A stretch of 64,000 nt of DNA from Trichosphaerium sp. ATCC 40318. Lineage: Eukaryota; Protista; Tubulinea. The stretch spans positions 62,001 through 126,000 of the forward strand of contig JALMLS010000561.1 of NCBI GenBank assembly GCA_038496445.1. Reading direction: 5' to 3'. Positions 339-48,276 of the stretch are shown here, in pieces (positions within the stretch are counted from its first letter, which is position 1; every line of letters begins with the position of its first letter). The notes beneath the pieces are model-generated. The model was not told the origin of the DNA. It saw nothing but the letters and a program-made list of their open reading frames with translations, and did not search any database. Both the position numbers and the translations under genes were made by a program.

Positions 339-693
339 AAAAAGTCTGACAGTTTCCTTCCATCCCGCACCAGCCAGAGAATGTGATTGCTACTACCATA
401 CTGTGGTCTTAGGTCTTACAGTACAAGACTACGCATATGGGTACTAATCGCGTAGAGCTTTAGAGTGGAGTAGGCTGCACGCGTGGTATGGTTCGTAACC
501 ACGCGTACAGCTGTTTTCCACAGATACAGGGAAATAAATTCCTGAGAAAAGTGAGGAAATGCATCCATTGTTCGTTTGCCTAACAAGTTTCATGAGTTTA
601 AATGCAAAAGACGACACTAAAACTGTTTGTTTCTTTTGTTTTACGACTCAGCGGGAAAATTAACGTCACAAAGGATCGGAGACTCTCACCACA
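339..693 (-). ncRNA. Candidate structured ncRNA (unknown family)
   Basis: Perfect DUSE-like ACCCACAA on the - strand at 745-752. Hairpins at 474-511, 429-455 and 413-429 gain G-U pairs only on the - strand. 5' UGUGGU can pair with ACCACA (402-407). T5 run at 339-343. No convincing ORF. Confidence 0.45.
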
Positions 694-1086
694 AGAATAT
701 ATGTTTTCCCAACTCATCAGAGTGTTTTTGATAGTAAAAAGGAGTTGTGGGTAGGGTAAAATACGTACATTTGCAAGAAGTGATGCGAGAGTAGTGAGAT
801 TGAGAAATAATGTTGATATGAGCTTAATCACGATTAAGTGCGCAAAAATCTGTTGTTTTGGTGACACATGGCGTCCGCTCACGAGGCTCTGGACCTTGTC
901 TATGTGGAAAACGTCGGTGCGAAGTGAGTGTCAAAAATCCAACATTTTCGTTTGACTAGTTTTGAAGAGAAAGCTCATTGGTATACGTAAGTAACCTTAC
1001 TGCGCGTAGATTCGCTTATTTAACGCGTTATTAGACACGCCTATCGCCAAAAACATTGTCAAAGTATCAATAGCGTCTAAAATATC

Positions 1087-2000
1087 ATGATTCTCCTTGG
1101 ATTAACGGGAGGCATCGCCTCAGGCAAAAGTACAGTAAACAAAATGTTTGAGTTACCAATGATCGATTTGGACGTCATATCGCGTGAGATATTTGTTCCA
1201 GGACATAGCGCGTACAAACAAACGTTCGTACATAAATTTTTAGCAGTGTTTTAGTTTATTTAAGCCTAAATCGCCTGTAGGGTGGCTGAATTCGGTAAAG
1301 ACATCTTAAATGAGGACGGAACAATTAACCGAAAAAAGCTTGGCGCTATTATCTTTAATGACGCTGCACAACGCAAAAAACTGAACAAAATAACGCATCC
1401 AGCCATTTTTACGTCTATGGTAAAGCAAATATTATGGCATTTCATAATCGGAACGAAAATCCTTCTTATTGATTCACCTCTGTTATTTGAAAGTGGTTTA
1501 TCAAAATGGATGAAGCACACCATTGTGGTTTATGTACCACCAGATCTTCAATTGGAACGGTACCATACCAATCGCACAAGTTGCCTTTTTTTGAAGTGTT
1601 CGAAATTCTATTCAAAAAAAAAATACTTGTAGTCACAACTCCTTGTTCCTCATCTCGTTTTGCATAGACTAATGGGACGTGATAAATCAACATCTGAAGA
1701 AGCACAACAACGTATTAGTTCTCAAATGACGTTAGACAAGAAGAAATCAATGGCAACTTATGTTATCAATAATTCAGGAACACTTGAGGCACGTGATGAG
1801 TTTTTAGGTTTTTTTTTATTTATTTTACCGATGCTTTCAATGTCGATATTGGAATATAACACTTGTTGCAGGAAACAAAAATGCAAGTGAAACGGCTTAA
1901 AGAAAAGTTAAATAACTCTACTGTATTATTGAGTAGGAACAACTTATTAATGCTATGTGCTGTACCATTATTGTACTATGCTTACCAACTTGTAATGTAA
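1087..2000 (+). CDS. DCAKD: Dephospho-CoA kinase (DCAKD/CoaE), 4 exons
   Basis: [18 protein letters not shown]-loop, [38 protein letters not shown]-terminal hydrophobic tail. Third intron is GC-AG (1789-1871). Confidence 0.93.
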
Positions 2001-2611
2001 CTGAATTTTTTTCACATGCTTTGTAAAATGTATTTGATGTCTATTTTGCGTAATGACATGACACGGTAAAACAAACATTGGCTGTTTATCCTAAACACCA
2101 ACGCTGCAATAACACCAACTGCACTTTGTATTGTAGAGCACGGTAGCGGAAGCCTATCGTCTTCGTAATACTTTGCTCCGTTTGTTGAATAAATTAGTTC
2201 CGCAATTCTCTCGCTGGATTACCCACTACGCCAAAATTATACTCCCTAAATGACGTAGAACATTATGTGATATCTGGTATCTGTTTCGCATTTTCCTGAA
2301 AAAATAGTCGCTTTTACTTTCAGCTGTGATTTTCGACCTTGGGACGGTGACCGAATAGATTTTGCTCGCGAATGCGTCCAGTAATAGTTTTATATGTCTA
2401 CGTTGTGCTTATACATCATATATGCGCTATTTTTGTCACGAAGAAAAATACGGATGCCAAAACCTTTGCAATTTTCTTCGCGATTTCTTGCACTTTAATT
2501 CTACACTTTCAATACCGCTCAACGCAATTTTAAAGAACATTTTACTTTATTTTACAGGTTATTATCATATAATTTACTAATTTAAAATGTCTAGAAAAAC
2601 CAATAGGCGCA

Positions 2612-2779
2612 TGGTATGCGTTGTTGTGTACATTTTAGTTTGCAATGACATTTTTTTTGATCATACCACAATTAAAAATATGTGTTGCATGATAAATCAT
2701 GTTCAAGTGCAGCCAGTAAGTAACCTTCTCGGCCTTTTGGCTAAGATCAAGTGTAGTATCTGTTCTATTCAGTTTAATC
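2612..2779 (+). repeat. ~168 bp inverted duplication (partner 4051-4219): U2 promoter plus first ~58 nt of U2
   Basis: Near-identical reverse complement, seen directly. Confidence 0.95.
2664..2673 (+). promoter_or_regulatory. snRNA upstream element (DUSE/PSE-like) TACCACAATT
   Basis: ~59 nt upstream of the U2 start; 1 mismatch to the Dictyostelium DUSE WCCCAYAA; retained in the duplicate. Confidence 0.6.
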
Positions 2780-2914
2780 TCTGAATGGGGGACGAATGTC
2801 CCCCACAAGATTAAGCGAATTTTTTCCGGGGGCAGGGGATTGTCGGACTGGCTTGCCTTTCCACCCCTGCAATGATCTGTCAGGCCTTACACTACCCGCC
2901 AGATGAGGTCAACC
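2722..2914 (+). ncRNA. U2: U2 spliceosomal snRNA
   Basis: CUUCUCGGCCUUUUGGCUAAGAUCAAGUGUAGUAUCUGUUCU 5' end with branch-recognition GUAGUA; stem IIa (auucag/cugaau); stem IIb (ggggga/uccccc); Sm site AAUUUUUU at ~2818-2825; 3' stem-loops. 3' end approximate. Confidence 0.96.
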
Positions 2915-3034
2915 CCTTCTCTAAACAACAAAGAAAAACAATAGCCACCTTCGGAATGGGAAGGCAATCTCTATCTTAGTACCTAAATTTACTGAAAAAA
3001 TTTTATAAGTCGAAAAATTTTGCTAAATTTCGTT

Positions 3035-3057
3035 GATACTACACCTGATCTTAGCCA
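3035..3057 (-). pseudogene. Short U2-derived fragment (branch-recognition region)
   Basis: tggctaagatcaggtgtagtatc, 22/23 identical to U2 2738-2760. Confidence 0.7.
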
Positions 3058-3276
3058 TAAAATAAATCACTTTTTTTTTCGTTTTCGAAACCTGTCGGAA
3101 GAATACAGAATCAAATTGCTGTTGTGTGTTCTTCTACGTCTAAAAGCTATTAACAACTCATTACTTTTTTTTTCCGTTATCAACATGATTGGACTCGGAA
3201 TATTACGTCACTTACTTACAATACTCAGCTGTCACAAATACCTCGAACTCACTAAAACGTTTTTGAGCTTTAGCGG

Positions 3277-3641
3277 ATAATTGAAACATTAAAAAGCGCT
3301 AAAAAAGAGTTGTACGAGTTGTAAGAGTTTGTAACTAAACTCATTGATTCAAGTGTAAGTTCAAGTGGTAAACTCCACGGCCGTTTCATAGGAAAGGGTC
3401 GGTCAAGCGTGCCAATATCTTTTGTTAGACTAACACCTACGCGTTTTATAGTCCTTTTTAGTAAATAATTGTACACTAGTTAATGTGCATTGCTCTGATA
3501 GAATGAGTTAGATTAAGCGTACCATAAGTACTAGTCTCGAGTGTTCTGGCTGGTGTTCGGTGTACACAATTCTTAATGGTGTAGGGTGCTCTGGGTTAGT
3601 AAGGTGGGATGTTAAATACTTCGCCATAAGGATGTGGTTTA
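3277..3641 (+). ncRNA. Diverged member of the 17065-17351 structured RNA family
   Basis: Shares tgttagact...gtctcgagtgt, tggcYggtgttc, aatgg, gggYgctctg and gggttaNtaagg in the same order, with stems kept. Ends approximate. Confidence 0.55.
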
Positions 3642-4017
3642 TTGCCAGTGCTTTGTTGCATAGTCAACTTTGATAATGTACAAAACTGAGTAAGTATTGC
3701 AATTCTCCGAGTAATAAAACATAAATCTTGCGTCGTGTGCAGTAAATACTGCGTCTAGATAATTTGCGCTCTAGTCTAAACATAAATCACTGTTTTAGAG
3801 TGTACCATTTTCAATGTTCACTCTACCCAAAGCCAGATGTTGTTGCAAGCAATTTGTAGCATGCTGTAATTGTGCAACTCGAGGGAATTACCTTGCAATG
3901 TCTTCACTAAGATGTGGTGCTTTACAAATTCTTCAAAATTGGTGGTTGTACTGTAAGATCGGTCAAATAGAAACTGATAAACAGGAGCAAGTGGTTTTAG
4001 ATTTTTTTTTCTCTCTT

Positions 4018-4108
4018 GGTTGATCCTTCTATGATGCTTAGCTAAGATCCGATTAAACTGAATAGAACAGATACTACACTTGATCTTAGCCAAAAGGCCG
4101 AGAAGGTT
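4018..4108 (-). ncRNA. Truncated fold-back U2 variant (U2 nt ~1-58 plus self-complementary tail)
   Basis: Identical U2 5' end and promoter. Tail gatcttagctaa...agaagg pairs with ccttct...ttggctaagatc. No Sm site. Confidence 0.7.
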
Positions 4109-4631
4109 ACTTACTGGCTGCACTTGAACATGATTTATCATGCAACACATATTTTTAATTGTGGTATGATCAAAAAAAAATGTCATTGCAAACTAAAATG
4201 TACACAACAACGCATACCAAACAGCACATGTTTTTATTTAAGAAAGTTGGTTCATTAAGAAAACCACAAACTGAATGGGCCGTACAAACCATGTGGCACG
4301 AAAATATTAAGTCTTGGGCAAGCGCCATTATACAACAAATTTCAGATGCTTACAATTTAGCATTGCATTTACTTCCAAGGTAAAATGTACATGTTGTTCT
4401 AAAAGAAGTTTGTTCAACCCTAACCGTGTGGCAATAGTGGGTGGACCTTGTTTATTTCTTGAACGTACAAGGGTTTTTCTGAAAAGTGCAAAAAATAACG
4501 TGGTTTCAGTATTTGTGTAAATAAAGGGTTTGGCTTCTTAAAATGAAACAAAATTACAACGAAAACAAGCTTAGTTTATGAAAACTCTTTTGTTCTTTAT
4601 ACATTAATTACAGTTTATGCAAATATTAAAC

Positions 4632-7600
4632 TCAAGCTATACAATCGCCAATTAATGCAAAAATACTGACGCTGTATGCTTGTCGATTTGCCAAGTTAAG
4701 TAAATTGAATCTTGCACTAAGAAAAAAAGAGTAAGGTATGGAATGTTGTGTGACTTGTATTTCATGTCACGTACTCAATTGTGTATCCACCTCTACTTCT
4801 TGATACTACAATTCTATTAACGCCAGGAAGTGGCGTTGCAAGGTAAAACACATTCTATTAAAACAGTTAGTGGTATTTTTGACAAAACAATTAAAGAAAA
4901 AGTTGAGAAGTCTGTACATTGAAAATGAGTAAGCCCTGTCTTAAATCCATTGACATCAATCTACCTGACCCGATAACTCGGACATTACTAGAAAAAAGTG
5001 AGAAGAGAGAAACAAGTGTTTTGTTTAAGCGTACTCAAAGAGTGTCACAAATGGAGCCAAAGAATTTCTTTGCCTACCTCCATGAGTTACGCCAGACATT
5101 CTTATGGTTTGAGCGACAGGATCAAATGTAATTTTGGCATCATTGCCGATGCATGACATAGTCACACTATTCTAAAAATAGTAGTGTTAAACATTTCAAA
5201 GAGAAAACCGAAATAGTACCCGACTATTGCCACGACCCAATTGCATACAATCAGTGTAAGAATCTCCCATAGAAAATACACCTGTTGGAAACCCTTGAAG
5301 ACTGAATGGAGAACATGTCGAAACTGCGTTTGTTGGAGGCAGTGTTGTAGTTGGTGGCAGTGTTGTTGGTGATAGTGTTGTTGGAGGATTGGTTGTCATG
5401 GGTGCCATTGTTGTTGGAGGCGGTGTTGTAGGGGGGTCAGTTGTTACTGGAGGTAGTGTAGTTGGAGGCGGTGTTGTAGGGGGATCCGTTGTCATTGGTG
5501 GTAGTGTCGTTGGTGATAGTGTTGTAGGAGGATCCGTTGTCATTGGAGGTAGTGTTGTTGGTGCCAGCGTTGTAGGGGGATCAGTTGTTGCTGGAGGTAG
5601 TGTTGTTGGCGATAGAGTTGTTGGAGGATCCGTTGTCATTGGAGGTAGTGTAGTTGGAGGCGGTGTTGTAGGGGGATCAGTTGTTGCTGGCGGTAGTGTA
5701 GTTGGAGGCAGTGTTGTCGGGGGATCAGTTGTTGCTGGAGGTAGTGTTGTTGGAGGTAGTGTTGTCGGGGGATCAGTTGTTGCTGGAGGTAGTGTTGTTG
5801 GCGATAGAGTTGTTGGAGGATCCGTTGTCATTGGAGGTAGTGTAGTTGGAGGCGGTGATATTGGAGGTAGTGTAGTAGGTGATAGTGTAGTTGGAGGGTC
5901 TGTCGTTGTTACTGGGAAAATATCATCGCATTCTACTGTTGTTGAGCCGTGAACCCAATTAGGGAGGCAGTTTGCAAAGTTATTTGGAGAAACTGCGTAA
6001 ATGTTATCAAACACGTTTTTTTTTTCTGATTGTACCTCTTCTCCATGCAATTGCAGCTCTTAAAAGAATAGGAACACGTTCGCTGTTTGTACCATAGAAA
6101 CCAGCTCTACCAAGATAAGCCACTCTATTTGTCTCCCGAGGACATCCAGTCGACATAAGTGATGCTACAATAGCAAGTCAAAATAGATAGATAAATAATT
6201 ATTGTACCGTCATCTGGTACAATACTTCCTGGAGTACATCCATCTCCACCAAAACCACATCCGTCTATAGACTCAGTATTCTCATATCCAGGTATAGGAA
6301 CATTCAATCCTCCGTAACAATGAGAATGTTCACTGCCAGCGTTATGACCAATCTCGTGAAACATTACTTTCTAATACCGATTAGAGAAAGCTGAGTTTGG
6401 TTGCTTCTTGGGAAAGTACCATTGATCCAGAAGCAAATCTCCATCCAATAGACGAAGAAGTATATCCAGGTGCACAGAATACATTCAGACCAGCCAATCC
6501 TGAAGCTCCATTACTTATATCACTTCCGAAAATAACCATAGTTGACTCTCTTTCAATTGAATTCTTGGCGCTTTAAATAAAAAGTTAGTTTTTGGAACAA
6601 AAGTACTAAACGGGATTAGCATACGGTGTATCCCGGTATTGGTTTTCTAAGGCAGTCAATGCGGTTCCACTGTTACTTGTTATACCATTATACGGATCAG
6701 TGTCTATAAGAAAAAAGTGTGAGAGGCTTTATCAGTGTGATTTTTATGTTTACTTTCGTCTGTGTAATAGAAAACTGAAGCTAGTTTGAGTTTAAGTGCA
6801 AAGTCTCTTTCGAAAACCCAACTTCCCCATGCGTAAGTAGCAGTTACCCAGTCAACAACAAATTGTTCAGACTGACCAGAGTTACGTATTACATCAGATG
6901 TAATATCGACAGAATACTAAGTTGATCGAATAAGTTTAAAGCTTCGAAGTTGTAAAGGCAAAAAAAACATACCCTTGCTGTATAGTATGGCGCATGTAAA
7001 TCTAGGCCTGCATTATACGTGTACTTGAAAAAAGGAGATCCACCTCCTTGACGTTTTTCGTCTTCGGACACTCCATCGTGATAGTGGTCATGTTCATCGA
7101 AAGCACAAGATGTTGCTATTTCAAAAACAACATTAACTTTTTTTGGCGTGTTTAGTTTTCGAGCGTACTTGGTCTTTCGTCTTTAGAAGTACTTTTCTTT
7201 GAACTAAGGTCAGGAAAGAAGAAGTATTCGTTCATATATGCTATAGTGCTTCCCTGGGCATTGGCTGTACCATGTATGATTGTTGCAAACTGACTCTAAA
7301 CAAAAAGTAAATAATTATTAAACGAAAAACACGTGGATTAAAATAAAAGGTAGTACTTCATCATTGTAGCCTCCAAAAACTTGTAAAGTTTCTTTATCTA
7401 CCATTATAAAAGCTGCAGAATTATCTCTATCATTGGAGCTTGCGACATCACCGTAAAAATACCATTTATCTGGATAGTATGCGGGTTAGTACACTTTTGT
7501 TTTTGCGCTAAAAATAGAAACGGTTCAACTCGATTCCACGTGATTTTTCGAAACGACAATTGCTGCGGAATTATCCGTGCAGACTCAAAAATATCGATTT

Positions 7601-8015
7601 TCCCTGTAAAGAAGGCTAGCACATACTTGGGAGTGGTTGGAGTTCGTTGTCATTTCTTGTTATTGTTGTTGTTGATAGAAAAGGTGTATCGATTCTAAAT
7701 AGTTCAAACTGTAGAGAACCATCGCTTATTATCCACGTGACTGTATTAGCGCTGTTAATAGTGTCCTGGCATGATGAAGAAATATCAGTAAGGAACTCCG
7801 CCCAAGAGACAGTCATTTGGCGCTTGGCCGTCGACGCCGTAGCACCTACATTGTGGTTACCAAACGAGGTTTAAAGTGGAAAAAACAGCTTGCTAATTTT
7901 TTAATTTGTATGGCGTCAAAGGGATTCGTGGTTGTATGTGTGTGTAATTGCATTTCGTACATGTAAGAATCGACAAAAGAAAACAAAGAGCGATAAGCGT
8001 AGAGATGCTCTTCAT
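4632..8015 (-). CDS. Secreted M12B/reprolysin-like metzincin metalloprotease with Pro/Thr mucin stalk, multi-exon
   Basis: Signal peptide MKSISTLIALCFLL; HEIGHNAGSEH zinc motif; SLMS Met-turn; PTT repeats. Apparent 1-nt frameshift near 5133. Confidence 0.85.
5330..5910 (-). repeat. Coding tandem repeat, ~45 nt (15 aa TTDPPTTLxPTTLPP-like) units
   Basis: About a dozen units visible in ORF 5196-6050. Confidence 0.95.
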
Positions 8016-9457: not shown

Positions 9458-9568
9458 CTTTGAGCATAGTGACAAAAGCGGCTTATACTCTTGGCTTAAT
9501 AACATTAATGTCTTTAGACTTTGCACTTAAGGCCCGTCAAGTAGAATGTGATTAACAAATAAACAGAA

Positions 9569-9640
9569 GGAGACTTGGTGTCAATGGTAACATATGAGAA
9601 TGTGGCTCTCGAGTTCCGGGTTCGATTCCCGGAGTCTCCT
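9569..9640 (+). tRNA. tRNA-His (GTG)
   Basis: GGAGACT/AGTCTCC acceptor stem; TGAGA-ATGTGGC-TCTCG anticodon arm; CCGGG-TTCGATT-CCCGG T arm; discriminator T. Confidence 0.92.
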
Positions 9641-9651
9641 CTCTTCCCCAC

Positions 9652-9724
9652 GATCCTTTGTTGTAATTGGTTAGCATACTAGGCTCTGAATCTGGTGATC
9701 TCGGTTCAATCCCGAGAAGGATCT
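9652..9724 (+). tRNA. tRNA-Gln (CTG)
   Basis: GATCCTT/AAGGATC acceptor stem; CTAGG-CTCTGAA-TCTGG anticodon arm; CTCGG-TTCAATC-CCGAG T arm; followed by a T6 terminator. Confidence 0.92.
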
Positions 9725-10108: not shown

Positions 10109-10990
10109 ATGACAAGCATCACAGCTCTTATTTTACTGTTTTGTATCGCCGTAGTAAACGCTGATGTATGCGATGGTCATTTGTCATGCTCCACGTGTAC
10201 ATCAGAGACAAGCCAAACTTGTTATTGGTGTCCGGTTGACCAAAACTGCCAACTAACGGAATCTTGTACAACAGGCAACTCTGTATCTGATTGTACGATT
10301 TATCGAGTTATCACGTGATTATTTTTTGTTTAAAACTCATTTTTTTCAAATAAACCGTATAGGTAGCTGTAGAACAGCAAAAGGCTGTGAGACATGCGTC
10401 ACGATGCCTGGTTCATGCGGATACTGCAGGTACGTTGATCCTTACCTTCTGAGGAAAGTTTTCTGAGAAGGAACACCAAAAAAACGGTTTGTTGAATTTA
10501 GTAAGAGAGTTTTTTGTTAATTACTTCTTTTAGAACTACTGGGATGTGTTCTACAAGTATGGGATATTGTAGGTATAGCGATTGGGCTACTATTAGCCTT
10601 AGATGTAATTGGGATACTCACCTACGTACCATGAAATGAAGTGATTTTTTTTGAGTCTAACTTTTATTTTTTTGACCAGATTACAATGTTTCTCTGACTT
10701 TGGGCATCGTTATGGGTTGTGTTGCATGTGTTCTGTTTATAACTGTTGCATCTATCTTAATTATAAGACACAGAAGGCGCAGAAGCAAAGTTCTTGTTGG
10801 TACGAACAGTTCTTATTTATCAGTTGTCTTACTTTTTTTTCAAAAAGTTCCCATAACAACTTCTCAATACCCTCAATACGGTGCTTATACCCCAAATGTA
10901 TACCAACCACCCCAACCATATGGTGCATCTTACCAACCTGATGAGTATGCCCCAAGGTATAATCATCCTCAGCCGCCGGCTGTACACTAA
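10109..10990 (+). CDS. PSI-domain single-pass membrane protein with Tyr/Pro/Gln-rich tail (paralogue 1)
   Basis: Signal peptide, SCSTC...CYWC...C, second CxxC...CGYC module, TM segment then RHRRRR, QYPQYGAY tail. Confidence 0.85.
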
Positions 10991-15925: not shown

Positions 15926-17005
15926 ATATGTAATAAAAAAAGTAAACAGGTTCATAAATGTCAGTTTTTTTCTTTCCCACAGCTAATACTAATACTATTC
16001 ATGCACACCAACTAGTGCAAGCATGCTCATGCTAGTTTTTTTGGAATAATAAAGTGGTTTTACTTATTCCAAATCAAACACGTGGCGAGAAATCAGCACA
16101 AGAATACAGTCCTTACTAACACTCAAAATAATAGTGCACGGAAACATCATCCTTTTTTTGGAAAATGGCACCATAATCTTTTTGTGCTGGGTCACGTGAC
16201 ATCTTTTTGTTCGCAATAGTTGCCGATGTGGTAGTTGTACCCAATTAAAGACAATACGAACGCGAAATACATTTACATGGAATATACACAAAAATACGCC
16301 AGCCTGTCTGCCGTTAGTGAATTGGAGCATTGTGTAAGCGTTTCGAATTTCTTGAACGAATTTGAAGACAGAAGCTATTTTAACAGCCAAAATTCACTGT
16401 ACGTTATCAAAAAGGTGGATGTACGCACTCTATAACGTTTCGAACCGTTTTGGTAAAAATACGGATTAAAAAAACGTGATCTACGTTGTTTGGCTAAATC
16501 TCTACAGAAACTAATTTGGTATGCGAATTTCTTTGTTCCACGCGTCGTTCTATATGTTTCTGGTATCAAAACTCATTTTGACTGTTGTAGAAGCCTGTTC
16601 AACCTAACTTCCTACAAACGCAATTTCTTTACTTTCAGCGACATTGAAACAAAGTAAAATGGGTATTTACAACAATACCGGTTCGAAAGTAAGGTGGAAT
16701 TCGAGCGGTATCCATTTTTTTGAATTTGAGTTTAACCGTTAAATATCCAACTGAAGTAAACGCTTTCAGAGTGTCGAAGGTGTACTTCTGAGCGTTCTAG
16801 CGTGTGTAACAGTGTTTAATAAATTACTCACTTGAAAACGAACAAAATGAATTCGAAGTTGGATGTTGATAGGTGCCGTTACCTCTACTACATGTGCATT
16901 ATCATTACATTCACTACACCTCCAATATCTCGGTTCAACGTATATCAATTCAATCCAAAATCTCGAACCTCTAAACAGCACGACAAATGCTACAACTTTG
17001 TGATA

Positions 17006-17013
17006 TCCCACAA
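17006..17013 (+). promoter_or_regulatory. DUSE-like element TCCCACAA (also 47123-47130 on the - strand)
   Basis: Perfect WCCCAYAA; same ccacaatt core as the U2 promoter. Confidence 0.6.
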
Positions 17014-17064
17014 TTTATTTCGTGGATAAACTTGGAGGTACAAAAGGATTTCTGGATTCATGAG

Positions 17065-17351
17065 ATAATGGAAAGCAAAAGGAGTGTGTGTTCTCTTGGC
17101 GCTTTCTAAATAGAAAATAACGACATGATTTGAAGTTGATGAGAGAATTCAGTACCTCGAGGTATCGTACCTGATTCTCAACACAAACATCAATCTAGGA
17201 TCATGTTAGACTGAGGGAAACTGGCATGAACTGGTACAGTTCCTCGGTCTCGAGTGTCCTTTGGCCGGTGTTCCAGTGTACGCCGTTGTCAATGGAGTGG
17301 GGCGCTCTGTGGGTTATTAAGGAGAGGATGTCTGCTCGGCCCTATCTTTTT
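17065..17351 (+). ncRNA. Novel ~287-nt structured ncRNA candidate, copy A
   Basis: DUSE at -59, five consecutive hairpins, T5 end, structure-compatible differences from copy B. Confidence 0.65.
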
Positions 17352-18080
17352 GTGAAAAAAAGGATTAGAAGAAAAATATTGCCTATTATCTAAAACATTG
17401 TTGGCGTTAAATGTATTTCTTGTTCATGAGAGCCAAGGACTGCCTCTGGTGTGGTTACAGCTAATTTACTCTACAAGCGAATCAGATATTTCGGCGCGTT
17501 AGGGCAACCCACGCTTCACAACTTGTAAGCACAGAACATTTTGCTATTCGTTTGTTGGCTTGAACTGCTATGTGAAAAAAAGCTAGAGGTGCTTGTACGA
17601 AGCGACTAAAGCACAAGAATTAGTTACTCGTGATCTTTATGAGCTGGTTCATCGCGGCAGTTTGTTTTAAAGCTGAAATCAGCATTTATATTTCGCTAAA
17701 ATAATTCGACACGTGTGTTGTCGAAACGTTGTTTACCCGTAAACTAATAGTAAAATATCTTTGACTGCAGTAAAAATGCAGCGCGTAAATCGTTCTGGGT
17801 CCTCCCAAAATGTGTCGTTAGGAGTTATCCTTTTCGTACATGTAGAAAAATGCAAAACATTAAAGAATGCATAAATGGTAGCCATTGAAGCTACTCTCAA
17901 CTAATTCTAAAATTCCTAGTTTTGTCGCTAGTACATTCGCTAGTTGTATTATCACCTAGTAATAGTACTCTACTCGTCAAATATATGTTGTGATGATGGC
18001 GTGTTTCATAAAAAGAAATTATTCGGAACTATTTTTTGTGTTAAGTCTTGTGCGTGCAGTGAAAGTAAATCTCCGCTACG

Positions 18081-21437: not shown

Positions 21438-21520
21438 TCTATCTTTCGTTCAAAGCGAGTTGAAAAAATCACATGAAAGATATTGACTGAATAAGTTCGT
21501 TGTGCTGGCCTGTACTGTAC

Positions 21521-25280: not shown

Positions 25281-26159
25281 AACTATCAACGTACTACTAA
25301 AATTAACCATTTGCTCCCTTTGGCTTCTTTTATTAGACCCAAACCAAACCCAATACCGTTTATTGGTATTAAAAGTAAAAAACCAATCGCAAGAGCGTAA
25401 AACGCTCTTTTATGAGCAGCTGATATATCCACCATTCTTCCAGACTTGTGGTGTAATTACACGACAAGTTTAGTGATTTAAACTGCTTCTTGGGTCACTC
25501 TGCACACTTTTCAATGAAAGGCCCAATAGAAGTCTTGCCAATTCCTCGGCTGTGCTTGCCTTCTATGAAAAACCAGCCATTGAATCAAGGAAAGGTTATA
25601 AAAGCAGTTCAACGGGTCGATCTAACCGACTTAGCCGTTGTAAACACAGACAAAAGTTTATGCACAAAATTAGTTAAAACAGACTCATTAATTAATGGGC
25701 TTTTCAGCCACTCGACATGTAGAACTTCGTATTTTACAGCGTGAGACTAATCCGGATGAAAAAAAAGTGTCAGGTGGTTGACAATGAAGTCAACTTCGCA
25801 CAAAGTCCGAAAGAAGCTAGTGCCGCCAATGTAAGTAATTGATAGAAACTGTATGCTTATTAACTGAGTACCAGTCGTATTTATATGATCAATCCATAAG
25901 GCTTGATCGTCTTTTAGTACACTCTTGGAGAAGCGAGAACATCTTAATATGACAACAAGTTCATGAAACAATACTCGTAGTTTTTATCACTTTATGTACG
26001 AAAGGTTCACTAGTGTTCTAGAGAAAGTTCTACTGACAAACTCACCCATTAGTCGTTTGACTTAAGGGTAGACAGATTCATATATTACTTTAACAAAAAA
26101 TGATGCAAACTGTTTCTTATAATCAAAGTTTGTTTTATTCGTTACTACGTGGTTTTGTT

Positions 26160-27109
26160 TTAAGATTTAGGTGGTCCCATTGCAGGTTGTCCCATTGCAG
26201 GTTGCTGTCCCATTGTTGGTTGATATGTAGGTGTAGTATAAGGCTGTTGAGGAACTTGGGCATATGGTTGAGGATTGTAAGCACCACCGTATTGAGGATA
26301 TTGAGAGTTGTTTACAGGTACTAAAAGAAAATGAATTAGTTTGAAAGAGTTAAACGTATTTTGAATAAGCACCTGTCACGTGGACTTCTCTTCTTCGCCT
26401 GTTATTCCTTCGTACTACGAGTACAACGATAACAACAATTAAAATCAAACAAGCGCATCCGCCACCAATCAGACCCAATACAATAGAAAGTACGTAATCT
26501 TGGGGAAGGTGTTATTTTTTGTAAAACTGAAATAAACTTCGGGTTTGCGAGATGTTTGCTTGTAACGTACGAATTGGGTTTGTCCACGAGCATTCAGATC
26601 TTACAAGAGCCCAATCACCATAACAATACGCGCTCGAATCGGTACAAGAAGCTGTATTTCTACAAAAAACAGAGTTTGAAAAAGTGATAAACCCAAAAGT
26701 TTAAGAAGTGCTCCTTATAAAATGTCACGTGAGGATTTTTTTGCAAACGTTGTTCTAATGGAACGTTTAAAACACGTACCTGCAGTATCCACAAAAAGTA
26801 TCCATGGCAACACACGTCTCACATCCAACAGCAGCGCTACAAGAACCTTTGGTTTAAAGTAAGCACAATACGATTATCTCGCAGTTTAGAGATGATAGAG
26901 CGGGTTTAATGAGGAGAGAGCGTACATGAGCTTACTGAGAATCCGTTATCGCAGAATATTGAAGCTTGGCATTTACCATCAACAGGACACCAACTACATG
27001 AGGGATAATTTGAAGTACAAGAAGTACAAGAATAATACTCGCTACAATCTTGTGCGAGTGTTATGTATAAAAGGGTAGCAACAACAGCAAAAATAGTCGC
27101 GTATTTCAT
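26160..27109 (-). CDS. PSI-domain membrane protein, paralogue 2
   Basis: MKYATIFAVV signal, CSWCPVDGKC, QYPQYGGAY tail with MGQxP repeats. Confidence 0.85.
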
Positions 27110-27721
27110 CACGTGTTGTAGTTATTGGTTGATTTTGTTAATTTTGAATTAGATTTGTGTTGACTGTCGCTTCAGCTTGTTTTAGAAGAGCCTCACCTAT
27201 GTTCGCTTGTAATACGGTATTAATTTCTAATTTCTTGTAGCTTTGATTATTCAACCAAACCTAAAATTTCACGAACACAAAACGTTTTTCCGACAGTTTT
27301 CTTGTTTCTTTGTCACGTTTTTAGGAATCTTGGCCTCAAGCGAAGTCGTAAAAGATGTGCCTGTACGAGGCAATCTAATATTCGTAAGTTGCCCAGTTCG
27401 TGGAAACTGTGAAGTACCAGGCAACAGGTTCGAGGTTAGAGAAACAGTAACAAGGCCAAGGAGCCATAAAATGGCATGAATTAATAGTGCTTTTTGCATG
27501 TTAACCTACTAGGCACTGGCACATCCAGGCGTAAAGAGGAGTATTTAACGTGAGATCGTTACAATCTCAAAGAAACTTACAAGCGCTCCCAAAGTATCTT
27601 GCGCTGAGTGTACGGTATTAACATAGCGTAATAATCTGTTTCAGAGTATAAGAGACAAGTGCATATGCAAACTGTTTATTACAATCAAAGTTTCTTTTAT
27701 TTGTTACTAGTGGTTTTGTTT

Positions 27722-28412
27722 TTAAGATTTCGGTGGTTGCCCCATTGTTGGTTGATATGTAGGTGTAGTATAAGGTTGCTGAGGAACTTGAGCATATGGT
27801 TGAGGATTGTAAGCACCACCATATTGAGGATATTGAGAGTTGTTTACAGGTACTAAAAGAAAATGAATTAGTTTGAAAGAGTTAAACGTATTTTGAATAA
27901 GCACCTGTCACGTGTACTTCTCTTCTTCGCCTGTTATTCCTTCACACTACAAGTACAACAATAACAACAATTAAAATCAAACAAGCGCATCCGCCACCAA
28001 TCAGACCCAATACAATAGAAAGTATGTTCTCTTGGAAAAGGTGTTGTTTTTTTCAAAGAAAGAAACTGAACAGTGGTTTGCGAAACATTCTCACTTACGA
28101 AATGGGTTTGTCCACGAGCATTCAGAGGCTACAATAGCCCATTCACGGACACAAAATTCGATCGAGTCGAACAAACCGCTATATTTCTTAAAGAGTGAAA
28201 AAAAATGAATCCGAAACGTTTAAGAAGAGGGTCGCGGTATTACATGTCACGTGGAGGTTTTTTCAAAATCGTTCTCATCTACCGTTTTAACACACGTACC
28301 TACAATACCCACAGAAAGTGTCCATGGCAACACATGTCTCACATCCGATAGCATCGGCACAAGAACCTTGGTTTATTATGAGTACGAGTACCTCGCTGTT
28401 TAATGAGGAGAG
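27722..28412 (-). pseudogene. 5'-truncated PSI-domain paralogue 3
   Basis: Tandem copy of paralogue 2 from exon 2 onward. Similarity stops inside intron 1; no signal-peptide exon found. Confidence 0.6.
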
Positions 28413-28746: not shown

Positions 28747-30903
28747 CTACCAGGTCGGCGTAGAAAATGCGCCAGCCAGCCGAAGTGCTTTTATACCTTT
28801 GTCACTCACTTTTGTTCCTCCCACGCTAATAGTGTGAGCACCTGCTAGGGCATTAACACATTCATCTGTAACACTTGTATATCTCAGAGAAATATTGTGG
28901 ACGCCACCAAGTGCTTTTACACCTTCATCTGTAACTGTAGTGCCAGCTAAATCTATAGTGTGTACACCTGAAAGTGCTTTGACCCCTTCATCTGTAACTG
29001 TAGTGCCAGCTAAATCTATAGTGTGTACACCTGAAAGTGCTTTGACCCCTTCATCTGTAACTTTAGTTTTCCTAAGATCAATCGTATGAACACCACTCAA
29101 CGCTTTTATACCTTCATCCGTTATCAGGGAAGAATTGGCAAGTTTAATGGTATGAACTCCTGCAAGTGCTTTTAATGTTTCATCTGTAACTTCAGTGTAC
29201 ACCAGGTCAATGAAATGGACTCCTGCAAGTGGTTTTACACCTTCATCAGTCACTCTTGTAAAACGAAGGTATATTGTGTGAACACCAGCAAGTGCTTTTA
29301 CACCATCATCTGTAACTTTAGTTCTTTCCAGAATAATTGTGTGAACACCAGAAAGAGCTTTGAGACCTTTATCTGTGATATTAGATCCCCAAAGGTTGAT
29401 TTTGTGCACGCCGGCCAGTGATATAACACCCTCTTCTGGAATATGACATGCTGCAAGGTGTATAGTATGAACACCTGCCAAAGCTTTCATTCCTTCAATT
29501 GTAAATTTCTTGTTCATTCCAAATCTGATTGTATGAACGCCCGCAAGTGCTTTCAAGCCTTCATCTGTTATTGAAATTCGCTCTAAACAAATTGTATGAA
29601 CCCCTGCAAGTGCTTTGACACCCCTGTCTGTAACCTTGGTATCATTAAGGTTAATTGTATGAACACCAGCAAGTGGTATCACACCTTCATCTGTAACTTT
29701 AGTTCCTTCCAGATTAATTGTGTGAACCCCAGCAAGAGCTTTTACACCTTCATCTGTAAATTGAAAACAACAACTAAGATTAATCGTATGAACACCTGCC
29801 AGAACCATGAGCATCTCGTCTGTAACCACTCCAGCCAAATTAATCTTGTGAACTCCTTTAAGCGCTTTAATACAATCAATAGTACACTCGCAGCTGTCGA
29901 AATCCATTGTGTGAACACCAGCAAGCGCTTTTAGACCTTCAGCTGTAACTTTCGTCGCTCTATTAAGGCCAATAGTATGAACACCTTTAAGCGCTTTGAT
30001 GCCTTCATCTGTTACTTCAGTACTACCAACATTAATAGTGTGAATCCCAGAGAATACTTTTATTGAACTATCTGTGGCTTTGGTATATCTTAGGTTGATA
30101 CTATGAGCACCTTTAAGCACTTTTATACCTTCATCTGTAATTCTTTGCACTCCGTGAAGATTGATTGTATGAACACCTTTAAGCGCTTTTAAACCTAACA
30201 CGTGATAAGCTTTTCAAAAAAACGTGTCATCATCGTTGAATACAAAATTAAAAAAACGTGATTGGAGTTGTATTAAACTGGTAATTTCATCAGAAGCTTC
30301 GCGTTCCATCGTAAAGTCAAGCACCGAGTGAAGAAGAGTTGTGTTATTCGAAGTTGTAAAAGAGAATAACACTAAGTCATGTTTGACTTATCTTAGAAAA
30401 CAGAAATTACTCGTATAATCGTATTAAAATACGATAAACGAACATGAGTGTTTTCAGACCGGACAGTCCACGTGTTTAAGTTTGAATGAGTTTGAATGAG
30501 TACCTTTGTCTGTTATCAGAGTTCTCTTTAGGTTGATGGTGTGTACACCTGATAAGAACGATAATGCTTCGTCTGTTACATTGGTATACTTAAGATTGAC
30601 ACTACGAACGCCTTTAAGCAGTTTGATGCCTTCGCTTGGCACTGATTTGAGTACTTTTACATTGGTGTGTTGTAGAGCGCCCTTGTACTTTGCGAAAGCC
30701 TTGGCATCATCTATCGTCTTCAACGTCGCGCTGTAGTACCCAATAACATCATGAACAATTGCAGCAAGTCTGCTACAACTCTGAGCGGCTGAATAACGTG
30801 CTTTGGTAGTAAAACAGAGAATGACGCCCAAAATCTCATTAGGCAGTGTAAAGAGGTTTGCGTTAACCTTTGTACGAGGGTCAGACGGTGTGTATTTATC
30901 CAT
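28747..30903 (-). CDS. F-box + LRR protein (21-22 aa GVHTINL repeats), 2 exons
   Basis: LFTLPNEILGVIL F-box; more than 20 LRR units; intron 30195-30503. Confidence 0.88.
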
Positions 30904-35330: not shown

Positions 35331-35455
35331 ATTACTACATCATCACAACTAAGGGTTTGTGGAGGGTAAATCGAAGTATAAGGAATGACAACAGATTTTA
35401 AGTAATTTGCTATTTTATTAGCTTCTTTGTTTTAAAAACATATTCAAACACTTCT

Positions 35456-42812: not shown

Positions 42813-43112
42813 TTTTATAAGCCTATACGCTTATCCACGTGATAAGAACTGAAAGGGAATACAAAAGGGATAAAAGGGGTAGAATAATAAAAAAAAACCC
42901 ACGTGGTACGGGTCTTCGTCGGTAATAACCGAAAAGACTGAATGATAAAACTGCACAAGTATTACAGTCTTTAGGAATTCAATAACGAGAAATAAAGGCC
43001 TTAAAGATTGGCGTGGAAGAGTAAAAACAACTTTTATTTCGGCACGAAAATATATTTATAAAAACAATGTTCAAGCTCGACAATAAACGTTTACGCTGTT
43101 ATACGTAGTTAC

Positions 43113-45293
43113 TTAGTTATCTACTACATTTTGCGCGTATACTTGCATTGCTGCCCATATTTCATCACTTGTAGGTAAGATTTCACTTGCAGGTAAGTTG
43201 AAGCCATAACGACCTTATTACAAACAATTAGTTTTGTAAAGAAAAACCACATAAAATATTATGCATTTCAGCACGTGAGTTTTATCCAAAAAGGATGGCG
43301 ATACTGAGCCAGAGTTTGAATTTAAAATCTTGTACCTGTATCTCTCAATTCAAGAGTGTAACTGTATACACCTCCAGCGGCTCCATAACCCCAATCGTCA
43401 GCTCCACCTTCACAGAAATAAGGCGGATGGAGAAGAAAGGGCAAAAATGATGTTTTCGTGTCAATGTATTTACGTACCAGAAGCAACATATAGAAGAATT
43501 GCAGAGTTACCATAAGTGTATGTTTTTGCTTCTGGTTGCCCTTTGATAGCATTCTATGAAAGTAAATTAGTGAGGAATAAATCAAAAACAAGTTAAAAAA
43601 AAAAGTTTTTTTTTTCCGAAATATCAGGTACGTACAACACAAGCAATAGCGCAAGAACGCATTGCTACATCATCTGCAGGTCTTGTACTAGTAGTATAAC
43701 CCCTATTAAAAACATAAGAAAGGAGTATAACAAAAGTAACAGCTCAATATTACCATGGATACAACCAATATTGACCATATGCGTGAACATCAACGAAACC
43801 AGCAAAGTTTGGAAGTGTGCTAACAAACTTTTGTACATTATCAGTCTCAGGCTCAGAGAAAGGTCCAGTGCCTATCAAAAGCTTAGAAGATCGAAAAAAA
43901 AACGAACTAGAAATTTTATTTTTTTGGTTGAGGTTTTTCGTATGTCGTACCATGGTATGTATCAGAGCTTGGGTTACTGGATGAACCACCAGTGTTCCAA
44001 CGATATCCAAAGTTTCTGTTCAAATCAACACCTCTTGCTGTTGTTCCTTGATTAACACGTCTGTTCTTTCTCCATAACCGATTGCTCAATCTGAAAAAAA
44101 AATAAAATGAGATATTGAACATCAATCACGTGATTTTTAATTTCGAAAAGTCTTTTGAAAAAAAGTAAAGCGAAATAAATTAGGGTGGAGCGCGGAAATT
44201 AATACACGTGAGCTTAACAGTCGCTCTTGCGGCTCTGAAAGATTTTTTTTTATATTTTGCATTAAAGTACCTTGAGAACTCAAATCCGTCTGGGTTGGAA
44301 ACTGGGAGTATGTACCAATCAATAGAGTCTACTTTACTCTTCAACACAGGGTCAATTTCTGTGTTCTCAAGAATTTGTGTTGCAAGGTAAACTAAGAAGA
44401 ACGGTGAGTTGTCAAGGCTTTTTTCAAGTACACAATATTTAAAAGACTTACGAACTGAAGGTGTAGTAATCCACTCTCTTGCATGTATAGTTCCCTCAAC
44501 GTATACACTCTTTCTGTTCGATCCTGTACCTTCAATCTTCAAAACAACTAGGTCTCTTCCTACACTTGCATTGAGACTAACGAGCCGACAGTAACAAAAA
44601 AAAAATCAAACAAAACCTGAAATTTCCATCGCTTTTTGCAGGTCATCTAGGATTTATCCCGTACCTTCGATGGACGTTCCGATTACTTGTGTTGATGCTC
44701 TAGAATATTTTGATGCTAGATCTTCAATGTAGGCAACATTTTCGGCAAAAGAATGATACTGTGTGAAGAACTCTACGTCCTTCAAGCCAAACTGAGTGAC
44801 ATTTCCCTATTTGATAACACGTCAACAAGCAATCAAAAAACTACGACAAGGTACACCACAGAGGTTTAACGAAGCGTTTGAAGGTAATTAAAGCGGTAAA
44901 ACGTGACAAAAAGCTGTAAAACACCAAACTTACTGTGAACGGTTCCATCTCTTTGTTGATATTACTTTGAACATCCTCAACATACACAGAGTGATCAATA
45001 CCAATTTTTCCCATTAATAACTGTTGTTCGGGCGTCAACTACTCTCATTAGCCACATAACACATTCTAACGCATTTACAATGGTGTATTACGTACTCTGA
45101 TATCAATGTGGTTGTCTTTGGAGGCAATCTTCCATACATCCAAGCTCAACTTTTCAGCAATATCCAACAGAATTTGGAACTGTCCGCTTCCATTTGGCTC
45201 AAAGCGCCATACTTGATGACCAGTAAAATCTTCCTTTGCGAAAGTGACCAATACGCATATTGCGATCAACGCAATATTCAAAACACGTGTCAT
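43113..45293 (-). CDS. Zinc carboxypeptidase M14A (CPA/CPB-like) with propeptide
   Basis: [43 protein letters not shown]. Confidence 0.95.
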
Positions 45294-45823
45294 GAGGCGT
45301 CACCAATAGAAAAGATCTTTCGAATGAATAAGTAGTAATGTAAAGTCAAGTCACTTTTTTGGCAACAAAGCTACTTCAGGGACGTTTTAATTCACTAAAA
45401 AGGGTTGGTAGCCAACTGCACATGCCAAGCGCCTTTCGTAGATACAAGAGAAAGCAAAGTACACGTCATCGCTTATTAATTGTTTATTTCTCGACACTAG
45501 GCTCTGATAGCATCACGTGTAACTTGGTAAAGGTGTCGCAATATGACCGTAAGCGTATACAGTGAATGGAGTGGTGCACGATCCTGTTTTGTATTTTTTT
45601 CAACCCTGACTTACACGCTGATTCTTGAAGTGTTATTTATCGATTACTATCGCTGTGACATGCGCATATTTAAATATAGTACTGGAATAGTCCGAGATTA
45701 TAACGTGGTATCAAGAGCGCTTCGAGATTTAAGTGAACGGAGTTAAGGTCATAACTTTACGTCTACTTATAACCATTATCAATAACAACCAACAACAACA
45801 ACTACCACTACTAAATCAACAAA

Positions 45824-46560
45824 ATGTCTGACTCTGAAAGCGTATGTGTTTACTATCGTACTGACATTTTTTTTCTTTTACTAACACGTGATTTTAGACA
45901 ATCAAAATTAAAGGACACTACTTCGGACCTACTGCCATTGGAGGTGTTCAGTCCGACTTAAAATCACTTCAAGAAGAGATAAATAATGCTGACACTATCG
46001 TATCTCCTATTGGCTATTGGTACCGTGCAATAAAAAACCGTCACTTGCTTATTCTCTTAGGCCATTTCATATGTTCAAAACAGCAAGTCGTGCAAAACCA
46101 ACGCCTTGTTTCATTATGGCCTACGTTCAAAAGGAAGACGAAAGAGTTCAGAATGCTCTTCTTGTCTTGTATGAAGAAAGCAGAGGTACAATTTGAAGAC
46201 CTTCTCAACGGTTGGTCCTTATTCTTGCTCAGGACCTATTGGACAACCTAATCACTGTATCCCACTTGTACTTCGTGGAGACAAGCAATGGACAATGGGT
46301 AAAATCACAAATAAAACTTCTAAAGATCAAGTGAGGCTCTATGCACGTGATCCAGACGGCAAAGGTACTGTCTCTAAAAATACAAAACCTAAATCTAATG
46401 GTTGTTAGGGACTACACCTTGCTTTGCAGTTGGCAGGAAGAACTTGAATGATTTTGCGAAATTACTAAAACCTTATGTTCGAGTTATTACTAAGGATAGA
46501 AAAAAGAAACTTGGTGTTGCACTTGAGGCTTTTGATGATCCTTCACTTCTTTCCGATTAA
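45824..46560 (+). CDS. Hypothetical protein, 5 exons
   Basis: Four GT-AG introns give one continuous frame; no recognised motif. Confidence 0.7.
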
Positions 46561-46784
46561 TCTTTGTATCAATAAATTGTATATTTTTTTCGAAAAAGAA
46601 AATACATAGCTTACAAGTACTAGTTACTAGCTTTTGTGTCCTTACCTTTAATCCTCAAACTTACTCTTGGAAAAAAAACTAAAGTACAATGTTGAGAATA
46701 GCCATAAGTATCAATAGACCAGTAAGAGGCCAACAGTGTTTTTTAGATAAATAGCAAAATAAAACTTCTAATCCTTTTTTTCAC

Positions 46785-47071
46785 AAAAAGATAGGGCCGA
46801 GCAGACATCCTCTCCTTAATAACCCACAGAGCACCCCACTCCATTGACAACGGCGTACACTGGAACACCGGCCAAAGGACACTCGAGACCAAGTAACTGT
46901 ACCAGTTCATGCCAGTTTCTCTCAGTCTAACATGATCCTAGATTGATGTTTGTGTTGAGAATCAGGTACGATACCTCGAGGCACTGAATTCTCTCATCAA
47001 CTTCAAATCATGTCGTTATTTTCTATTTAGAAAGCGCCAAGAGAACACACACTCCTTTTGCTTTCCATTAT
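46785..47071 (-). ncRNA. Novel ~287-nt structured ncRNA candidate, copy B
   Basis: 5 differences from copy A; DUSE and T5 retained. Confidence 0.65.
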
Positions 47072-48276
47072 CTCATGAATCCAGAAATCCTTTTGTACCT
47101 CCAAGTCTATCCACGAAATAAATTGTGGGATATCACAAAGTTGTAGCATTTGTCGTGCTGTTTAGAGGTTCGTGATTTTGGATTGAATTGCTACACGTTG
47201 AACCGAGATATTGGAGGTGTAGTGAAAGCAATGACAATGCACATGTAGTAGAGGTAACGGCACCTATCAACATCCAACTTTGGTTTCATTTTGTTCGTTT
47301 TCAAATGAGTAATTTATTAAACACGATTAGAAACGCTAAGACGCTCTAGTGTATGCCTCTAACGCTGTGAAAGCGTTTACTTCAGTTGGATATTTAACGG
47401 TTAAACTCAAATTCAAAAAAATGGATACCGCTCGAATTCCACCTTACTTTGAACCAGTATTGTTGTAATACTATCGCTTTTATTTCATGTGAAGCAAGGA
47501 AATTTAATTTGTAAGCGGTTAGGTTGAACAGGCTTCTACAACCGTAAACAGGCGTTTTGAAAAGAAAAACATTAAGAACAACGCGTGGAACAGAGAAATT
47601 CGATATAGAAAACAGTTTTTGTAGCGATAGCGAAACGATTTGTAGATCACGTTTTTTTACCGAATTTTACATCAAAACTGTTCAAAATGTTATAAATCAT
47701 ATATTTACACTGCTGATGATAACTTGCCGGTGCATTTTGGGTGATACAAACTCAAGTACGTGTAAAATCTCTTTTTGGCTCTCAAATAAGCTCAAACACT
47801 TCGTGACGCCTGAATAACACTGACGAATTGCTCCAGTTCACTTACGACAGAAGCCATTGTATTTTCACTTAATTCGACTAACGTGATTTTCTCGTGTCTT
47901 TATTGCATAGAATTACGACTGACTGATTCAAGCGTTTACAACCAACTGAGTATCAACGTATGAATGACATATTAGATTCACACGTAGTTTTTTTGTAGTT
48001 GTTACACTTCACGCTTCACGTTGATTGACAGTAACTTCACAGTTAACATCCAGTTAAATTGTTAGTATCATAGAATGAAGGATGTTGTAAAAAAAAGCAC
48101 GTGAAAGTAAAAATGCACGAGTTTTCTGTTTAGTTTTTCAATTGCTTACGTACTCTACAACAACTGTCTACCATTCAAAAATTCATCTAGTATAATACAG
48201 CGTTACTACAGTTATCAAGAAGAAGTTTAAGATGCTACAGCAGTTACAAAGAATTCGTCACCAGCTGTGTTGATGA

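Follow-up and report, generated by a model that had tools for sequence, protein, structure and literature searches.

Does a promoter-like octamer upstream of a U2 small nuclear RNA (snRNA) gene mark a wider class of structured non-coding RNA (ncRNA) genes in the tubulinean protist Trichosphaerium sp. ATCC 40318? The question is raised by a 64,000-nucleotide stretch of contig JALMLS010000561.1 (assembly GCA_038496445.1, forward-strand positions 62,001 to 126,000; hereafter the window), in which the U2 gene is preceded by TACCACAA, an octamer resembling the Dictyostelium upstream sequence element (DUSE). An earlier note on this DNA proposed that three further octamers of the form WCCCACAA each stand before a mid-sized, hairpin-rich RNA gene. 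The window is eukaryotic in character, with a guanine-plus-cytosine content of 35-40% (~37%) and GT-AG introns of 50-110 nt. Two of the three octamers were found to lie in copies of one repeat unit, and the overall outcome is a good candidate gene family together with an unproven promoter hypothesis.

A duplicated unit and its candidate RNA

The two octamers in question are embedded in inverted copies of a single ~975-nt repeat (copies A and B; Table 1), which are 89% identical overall and include 710 nt that match at 94%. Agreement between the copies is distributed as a mosaic. By the coordinates of copy A, identity is about 60-78% over positions 16431-16689, 100% over 16690-16768, 59% over the spacer at 16769-16812, 93% over 16813-16949 and 98.3% over 16950-17371 (7 changes in 422 nt), after which similarity falls away over 17372-17405 and is absent beyond 17405. 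The near-identical block takes in ~112 nt upstream of the presumed start of the RNA and extends ~20 nt beyond a T5 run. The sequence ATCCCACAATT, which contains the octamer, is enclosed by 65 nt without a single difference between the copies, and its distance from the presumed start equals that of its counterpart in U2. Copy A and a PPPDE peptidase gene ~730 nt downstream of it are arranged in tandem, and copy B faces the 3ʹ end of a convergent gene. Because the two copies have different neighbours, the unit is autonomous rather than the leader of a duplicated protein gene.

Additional copies were sought with a covariance model built on the 85-nt core of the duplicated unit (model R1), which was scanned over the 64-kb window and returned three copies only, with no fourth match above 11 bits. 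The third is a diverged copy of the core (E value 1e-11; Smith-Waterman score 41 versus 11.7±1.5 in shuffled sequences) whose insertions and deletions measure 2, 1 and 2 nt, and these lengths exclude a conserved reading frame in the core. At 3530-3621 there is no recognisable 5ʹ half, motif or terminator, and the sequence shows no fold (z-score +0.2). This third copy is probably a decayed and much older relic that has kept the 3ʹ core only.

Predicted folding depends on the strand. On the proposed strand, the RNA of copy A folds at -97.3 kcal/mol versus -70.5 kcal/mol on the opposite strand, and the corresponding values for copy B are -86.4 and -61.1 kcal/mol; 17-18 G·U pairs are present on the proposed strand of the copies. 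When compared with random 300-nt windows (mean z-score 0.04, standard deviation 1.13, 5% below -2), copy A is hairpin-rich, as the earlier note had described all three loci (z -2.9), whereas copy B (-1.6 to -1.8) and the third locus, at 339-752 (-1.8 to -2.1), are only marginally so. In the layout predicted for copy A, the 5ʹ hairpin (17069-17108, z -3.3) has an internal loop, further hairpins lie centrally, and the conserved core spans 17243-17344. Five substitutions between the copies fall within the presumed RNA. One affects a loop, and a further two replace C by U, so that G-C pairs become G·U pairs, which is neutral on the proposed strand only. Of the 17 core pairs the relic retains 15, among them a C-G pair replaced by U-A, and there are four changes of the G·U type.

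A protein-coding gene was considered and rejected. The open reading frames (ORFs) overlapping the two copies have no Pfam match, an ORF of 65 amino acids (aa) in one copy is shortened to 37 aa in the other, and the core carries the frame-breaking indels described above. None of the spurious ORFs over the RNAs is on record, and a 55-aa ORF among the sequences examined is without a homologue.

Selective homogenisation or conservation, retention of the core in a third copy, a strand-specific fold and autonomy in two genomic contexts together argue for a real multi-copy non-coding gene, and we give an even chance to the proposal that the duplicated unit is a genuine, unclassified family of ~290-nt ncRNA genes. 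The earlier suggestion that this lineage possesses one or more classes of mid-sized structured ncRNAs holds to the extent that this unit behaves as a multi-copy non-coding gene, but no class defined by the motif emerges. If the proposal is correct, each copy would be an autonomous snRNA-type gene driven by an external promoter within ~110 nt upstream, including ATCCCACAATT as an element of the DUSE or proximal sequence element (PSE) type ~56 nt before the start, as in the nearby U2 gene. Transcription would end in the T5 run in the style of RNA polymerase III (Pol III). In the resulting transcript, a 5ʹ hairpin interrupted by an internal loop would be followed by several hairpins in the centre and by a 3ʹ core of two helices that is conserved, and both promoter and RNA would be kept near-identical through selection, gene conversion or both, like other multi-copy small-RNA genes. 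The size, the gene organisation and the proximity to U2 permit a weak guess that the RNA acts as a ribonucleoprotein (RNP) scaffold, in the manner of small RNAs of the nucleus or nucleolus. Taken as a whole, the picture of a lineage-specific ~290-nt ncRNA family with two intact copies and a relic, organised as snRNA-type genes with a DUSE/PSE-like promoter, falls slightly short of an even chance in our estimation.

The 79-nt island of complete identity (16690-16768 in copy A, 47368-47446 in copy B) lies ~300 nt upstream of the motif between diverged flanks and holds a T7 run (16715-16721). It might encode a second small RNA, act as a distal promoter element or have arisen as a conversion tract. 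Further conserved blocks are located upstream at 16467-16484, 16524-16551 and 16584-16608, and folds of 16586-16722 are unremarkable (z -0.3).

Table 1. Features of the window that are discussed in the text, with positions counted from its first nucleotide.
Feature	Positions	Strand	Remarks
Repeat unit, copy A (c2; the 17006 locus)	16431-17405	+	Upstream conserved blocks, then near-identical 3ʹ block
Repeat unit, copy B (c3; the 47130 locus)	46729-47694	-	Motif at 47121-47131; presumed RNA 47074-46785
ATCCCACAATT (TCCCACAA at 17006-17013)	17005-17015	+	Matches U2 upstream element at 10 of 11 positions
Presumed ~290-nt RNA, copy A	17062-17351	+	5ʹ end inferred; T5 at 17347-17351
Diverged copy of the 3ʹ core	3530-3621	+	79% identical over 85 nt; 83.2 bits with model R1; in spacer of U2 inverted duplication
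Full-length U2 snRNA gene	2721-2918	+	Rfam RF00004, 150.9 bits, model positions 1-192
ATACCACAATT, containing DUSE-like TACCACAA	2663-2673 (TACCACAA 2664-2671)	+	57-58 nt 5ʹ of U2 start
Inverted copy of U2 promoter (110 nt) and first ~59 nt of U2, then unrelated sequence	3989-4219	-	Inverted repeats; Rfam partial U2, 63.1 bits
Rfam matches at gathering threshold, whole window	2721-2918; 3989-4109; 9569-9724	+; -; +	U2; partial U2; tRNA-His and tRNA-Gln
ACCCACAA motif match (in locus c1, 339-752)	745-752	-	Flanks unlike U2 or copy A element beyond CCCACAA
Structured, ORF-poor intergenic stretch	339-692		Between PhyH-like gene (-, ATG 298) and dephospho-CoA kinase gene (+); 14-bp hairpin 474-511
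C/D-box-like arrangement	648-719	-	UGAUGA 719-714; GGGAAAA 710-704 pairs with UUUUCCC 659-653; CUGA 651-648

The upstream octamer and competing readings of the unit

The dictyostelid DUSE is an octamer, [AT]CCCA[CT]AA, that resides ~60-63 nt upstream of the RNA start (PMC7919456, PMC3188802). An octamer of this kind had been reported ~59 nt before the U2 gene of the window, and TACCACAA is indeed present, at a measured distance of 57-58 nt. The chance that an octamer fitting the DUSE occurs at the canonical distance from U2 is ~1e-3, an estimate based on eight allowed octamers and seven positions. Judged against the earlier dictyostelid definition, this placement is the sole point concerning the motif that is significant a priori. 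A second occurrence of the U2 motif at 4157-4167 is not independent of the one at 2663-2673, because it lies inside an inverted duplication (2612-2779 and 4051-4219) that is 100% identical and comprises 110 nt upstream together with the initial ~59 nt of U2. In the minus-strand copy, unrelated sequence that is able to fold back on the 5ʹ part of U2 (GAUCUUAGCUAAGC) comes next, followed by an A9/T9 run, and this copy may represent a truncated derivative of U2 or a pseudogene.

Beyond U2, the only perfect WCCCACAA matches in the window are located at 745-752(-), 17006-17013(+) and 47123-47130(-), precisely where they had been reported. All three are also intergenic, as stated previously; they reside between recognisable coding exons, and the short ORFs that overlap them lack Pfam matches. 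However, 3 matches are to be compared with the 4.08±2.21 expected from dinucleotide shuffles of the window, and the scan for the broader pattern WMCCAYAA that had been recommended as a check yields 24 matches versus 23.0 expected. When one mismatch is allowed, ATACCACAATT has 5 matches versus 2.39 expected, with the U2 duplicates accounting for two of them. The exact pattern ATMCCACAATT is confined to the U2 pair and to copies A and B of the unit (4 matches versus 0.08 expected), a result that is circular in that the pattern was written from those very sequences. Furthermore, since copies A and B derive from one repeat, the perfect matches represent two independent loci, not three. With counts at chance and two of three loci explained by one duplication, the proposal of an RNA gene class marked by the motif is not upheld, and it is doubtful that the octamer acts as the promoter element of the duplicated unit.

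Other parts of the proposed gene architecture can be compared with chance in a similar manner. The T5 run said to follow each octamer is present in all three cases (17347-17351, 46789-46785 and 343-339), but any position gives such a run. Runs of five or more T residues recur once per ~234 nt on the plus strand and once per ~287 nt on the minus strand, and therefore a T5 at 290-350 nt is uninformative. Folding of the 300 nt that begin 58 nt after each of the 24 WMCCAYAA matches, another check recommended earlier, gives z-scores of -2.9 for both copy A and U2, -2.1 for the locus at 339-752 and -1.8 for copy B, but the best score (-3.4) falls in a coding exon. This strongest fold (10659-10484, minus strand), which follows ACCCATAA at 10717, was rejected as a further RNA candidate because it is antisense to coding exons of a plus-strand gene for a PSI-domain/transmembrane protein, and it is a caution about false positives. 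A permissive pattern (the motif, a gap of 52-68 nt, and a stem of 6 bp or longer that adjoins a T-run lying a further 200-420 nt away) identifies 9 loci versus 4.0±2.0 in 200 shuffles. The terminal stems concerned are GAGAUA/UAUCUU in copy A and GAGAGUCU/AGACUUUU in the locus at 339-752. The 5ʹ ends of all three presumed RNAs were placed by reference to the motif and have no independent anchor.

Several observations weigh against a ~290-nt RNA family with a DUSE-like promoter. Conservation that continues ~20 nt beyond the T-run is more than a simple Pol III terminator needs, and the identity of the copies is explicable by gene conversion alone. Two of the five substitutions within the presumed RNA strike both partners of one pair and leave an A·A apposition in copy B, and the pair statistics of the core are not significant, as the observed value is reached in 162 of 500 shuffles (three sequences). 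Chance alone gives ~2 matches per window at 10 of 11 positions to the U2 element. The terminal stem was rejected as an independent anchor for the 5ʹ end, both because such stems are common and because its pair probability is 0.002 once upstream sequence is included. Two RNA sequencing runs contain 5-6% of the words of window positions 1-6000. Finally, searches of metagenome, prokaryotic-genome and viral contigs revealed no homologue: a strict core pattern has no match in metagenome contigs, a looser pattern has 67 metagenome loci of which none extends past the pattern by blastn, and prokaryotic-genome contigs and viral contigs gave no match.

The unit could instead be a dispersed repeat or an old segmental duplication, such as a mobile-element fragment or a regulatory module, whose 3ʹ part has been homogenised by conversion, which encodes no functional RNA and in which the octamer is present by chance. 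Such an origin would need several conversion tracts, or selection, to generate the mosaic of 100%, 59%, 93% and 98% identity, although the 98-100% identity by itself fits a recent conversion tract. It agrees with motif counts at chance, with just two full copies and one fragment in the window, and with the lack of an Rfam family or an external homologue. The moderate fold z-scores (-1.6 to -2.9) also favour it, but the strong strand asymmetry in folding and substitutions that preserve pairing through G·U suggest that the RNA itself is under constraint. Moreover, the unit showed neither terminal inverted repeats nor a poly-A tail nor a target-site duplication common to both copies; an 18-nt inverted pair (16258/17408) was rejected as a terminal inverted repeat, being absent from copy B. 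We consider the dispersed-repeat explanation possible but on balance somewhat unlikely.

Known RNA families were sought with Rfam models, which were applied to the whole window with both the gathering threshold and E≤5, and to sub-regions of 1.4 kb and 0.76 kb with E≤10 and laxer filters. This covariance search, also recommended earlier, recovered U2 (two matches) and tRNA (two matches) and otherwise chance-level matches. At the candidate loci, thresholds of E≤5-10 give just chance-level matches, in agreement with the previous failure to assign these sequences to known families. The duplicated ~290-nt RNA might be a representative of U3, RNase MRP, telomerase RNA or signal recognition particle (SRP) RNA that has diverged so far that covariance models miss it, and the size, multi-copy layout, snRNA-like upstream region and T-run of the duplicated unit would fit the U3 or MRP genes of some lineages. 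The presumed RNA also carries UGAUGA (17137-17142), a sequence faintly like U3 box A (UUUCUAAAUAG) and a 5ʹ hairpin whose internal loop recalls P3. Nevertheless, no U3, MRP, RNase P, SRP, 7SK or telomerase model gives a match at E≤10 in the 1.4-kb sub-region with lax filters or at E≤5 in the whole window, and inspection by eye revealed no convincing U3 boxes, MRP/P features (CR-I, CR-V, P4), SRP features, Sm site or TTAGGG-type template. We regard membership in one of these families as very unlikely.

Each family was also rejected individually. For U3, UGAUGA and the loose UUUCUAAAUAG are the only signs, no CUGA (box D) occurs near the 3ʹ end, and boxes A'/A (GAUCAUUUCUAUAG) are absent. On 1-4400, 200-960 and 16300-17700, both strands included, RNase P and MRP have no match at E≤10; a CR-I of the GAAAGUCC type is lacking, and an AGUCU/AGACU pairing in the locus at 339-752 is just its closing stem, not P4. 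No SRP-family match was obtained with Rfam, and the folding strand has no TTAGGG-type stretch of at least 8 nt that could serve as a telomerase template. The Class I RNAs of dictyostelids were rejected because the candidates measure ~290-350 nt versus 42-65 nt and no Rfam match occurs at any candidate; whether Rfam contains a Class I model was not confirmed, and their 11-nt motif was not itself searched.

The locus at 339-752 and other features of the window

The third octamer, ACCCACAA, precedes a sequence that has little in common with the duplicated unit. Alignment scores between this locus and either copy A or the relic equal those of shuffles, model R1 has no match in it, and only the 7-nt CCCACAA is held in common with copy A. 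Its plus strand folds at -110.6 to -114.9 kcal/mol (z -4.1 to -4.5) versus -94.9 kcal/mol (z -1.8) for the minus strand that had been proposed as the RNA. A cluster of three RNAs behind one motif is not established; this locus has no sequence in common with the others and its opposite strand folds better. The locus stands outside the duplicated family and its motif is probably coincidental; that it encodes an RNA of the kind proposed is unlikely.

We lean slightly towards the view that the locus is not a motif-driven minus-strand RNA gene, and is instead either a structured divergent promoter or leader of the genes for a PhyH-like protein and dephospho-CoA kinase, or a plus-strand RNA, with ACCCACAA present by coincidence. 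The locus occupies the whole 570-nt gap between these divergent genes, with its T5 run only 41 nt before the PhyH-like ATG, and its lack of resemblance to the duplicated family accords with such a role. The better fold of the plus strand also favours this view, but the genuine U2 gene shows no strand asymmetry in fold energy (-69.4 versus -69.7 kcal/mol), and fold energy is therefore a poor guide to strand. Two details fit the minus strand better: the 14-bp hairpin has a U·G pair on that strand only, and the T-run adjoins a terminal stem of 8 bp whose spacing from the motif is as expected, although stems of this sort are common. Upstream of the dephospho-CoA kinase ORF, a short spliced reading frame at 869-1090(+) (MASAHEALDLVYVENVGAK..., ~45 codons with the intron at 926-1010 removed) ends in a stop codon that overlaps the kinase ATG (ATGA). 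The best relative of this kinase is 56% identical and is known only from a EukProt transcriptome, which offers no surrounding genome sequence for a comparison of synteny.

Another reading of the locus regards its 5ʹ part as a ~100-nt small nucleolar RNA (snoRNA) of the box C/D class (~744-640, minus strand), possibly an acetylation guide like SNORD13/U13, with the octamer located immediately upstream instead of serving as a -59 element. The sequences UGAUGA and CUGA lie 62 nt apart, each beside one strand of a perfect 7-bp helix (GGGAAAA/UUUUCCC), and a 6-bp outer stem (UUUUAC/GUAAAA) links the 5ʹ region to a 3ʹ extension, as in pre-SNORD13 (PMC9670809), although this outer stem is not adjacent to the boxes. 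On this reading the locus would resemble SNORD13/U13 in its C- and D-like boxes, in a stem beside the kink-turn, in being an independent gene and in having a 3ʹ extension that pairs with the 5ʹ region (PMC9670809). The full snoU13 model of Rfam aligns across the stretch, but its score of 12.1 bits (E 8.9) is far below the gathering score of 46, and in contrast to SNORD13/U13 the pairing to the conserved 3ʹ end of 18S ribosomal RNA is not significant, being no better than in shuffles (p 0.33 and 0.43, with an 18S sequence that is not from this organism). The C/D arrangement at 648-719 is also incompatible with an RNA start at ~690. We judge a C/D snoRNA at this position quite unlikely.

Several other features of the window were recorded. 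The tRNA-His(GUG) and tRNA-Gln(CUG) genes at 9569-9724(+) are arranged in tandem with a spacing of just 10 nt and may form a dicistronic tRNA pair. A tandem duplication (26103-26854 and 27665-28374), whose members are ~1.5 kb apart and have blocks that are 78-95% identical, is probably a paralogous gene pair. Repetitive coding sequences include 63-nt (21-residue) repeats inside a 484-aa ORF at 28765-30633(-), 48-nt repeats with strong GC skew at 5234-5953, and 12-nt repeats rich in proline and threonine at 59830-60612. MORN-repeat proteins are encoded at 48277-48735 and 61618-62883, and the nearest Atlas clusters of the latter protein include amoebal (Tubulinea) and viral entries.

Comparison with known small-RNA genes

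The DUSE of dictyostelids serves genes transcribed by both Pol II and Pol III, among them those for spliceosomal snRNAs and for Class I and Class II RNAs, and a variant of the octamer with two C residues occurs in some species of Dictyostelia (PMC7919456, PMC3188802). Many Class I genes are followed by T-runs and belong to multi-copy families, and their RNAs of 42-65 nt have pairing 5ʹ and 3ʹ ends, which form a short terminal stem, and a conserved ~11-nt motif beside the 5ʹ stem (PMC7919456, PMC3188802). The U2 gene of the window resembles dictyostelid DUSE genes in having the two-C form of the octamer at 57-58 nt. However, the candidate RNA of the duplicated unit, at ~290 nt, is much larger than Class I RNAs. 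Dependence on the element has been seen in expression data in Dictyostelia, whereas in the window the motif is not enriched.

With the gene architecture proposed for it, the duplicated unit would also parallel the U3, 7SK, RNase MRP, Y and vault RNA genes of animals and plants that are driven by a PSE or an upstream sequence element (USE). The common points would be an external promoter element set at a fixed distance upstream, a T-run as terminator where Pol III is the polymerase, and products of 100-330 nt of the RNP-scaffold type, but the candidate RNA has no sequence or structure match to U3, 7SK, RNase MRP, Y or vault RNAs. A further parallel exists with multi-copy snRNA families under concerted evolution, in which promoter and coding region are near-identical, flanks have diverged and truncated or relic copies lie nearby. 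The same pattern is exhibited by the pair of U2 copies in the window. Compared with such families, the duplicated unit shows only two copies and a relic in the window.

A more far-reaching interpretation is that a DUSE-like element, documented so far only in dictyostelids, functions here as a general small-RNA promoter for U2, for the ~290-nt family and possibly for an unrelated ~350-nt RNA at 339-690, and that these larger counterparts of Class I RNAs belong to a sizeable lineage-specific repertoire of mid-sized ncRNAs. We consider this interpretation rather unlikely on the present evidence. If the duplicated unit is transcribed as proposed, it would represent an uncharacterised family of mid-sized RNAs in a protist lineage. 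Its element at a fixed upstream distance would then provide a handle on the ncRNA repertoire of this genome, as the DUSE did for Dictyostelium, and would bear on whether promoters of the DUSE type predate the dictyostelids.

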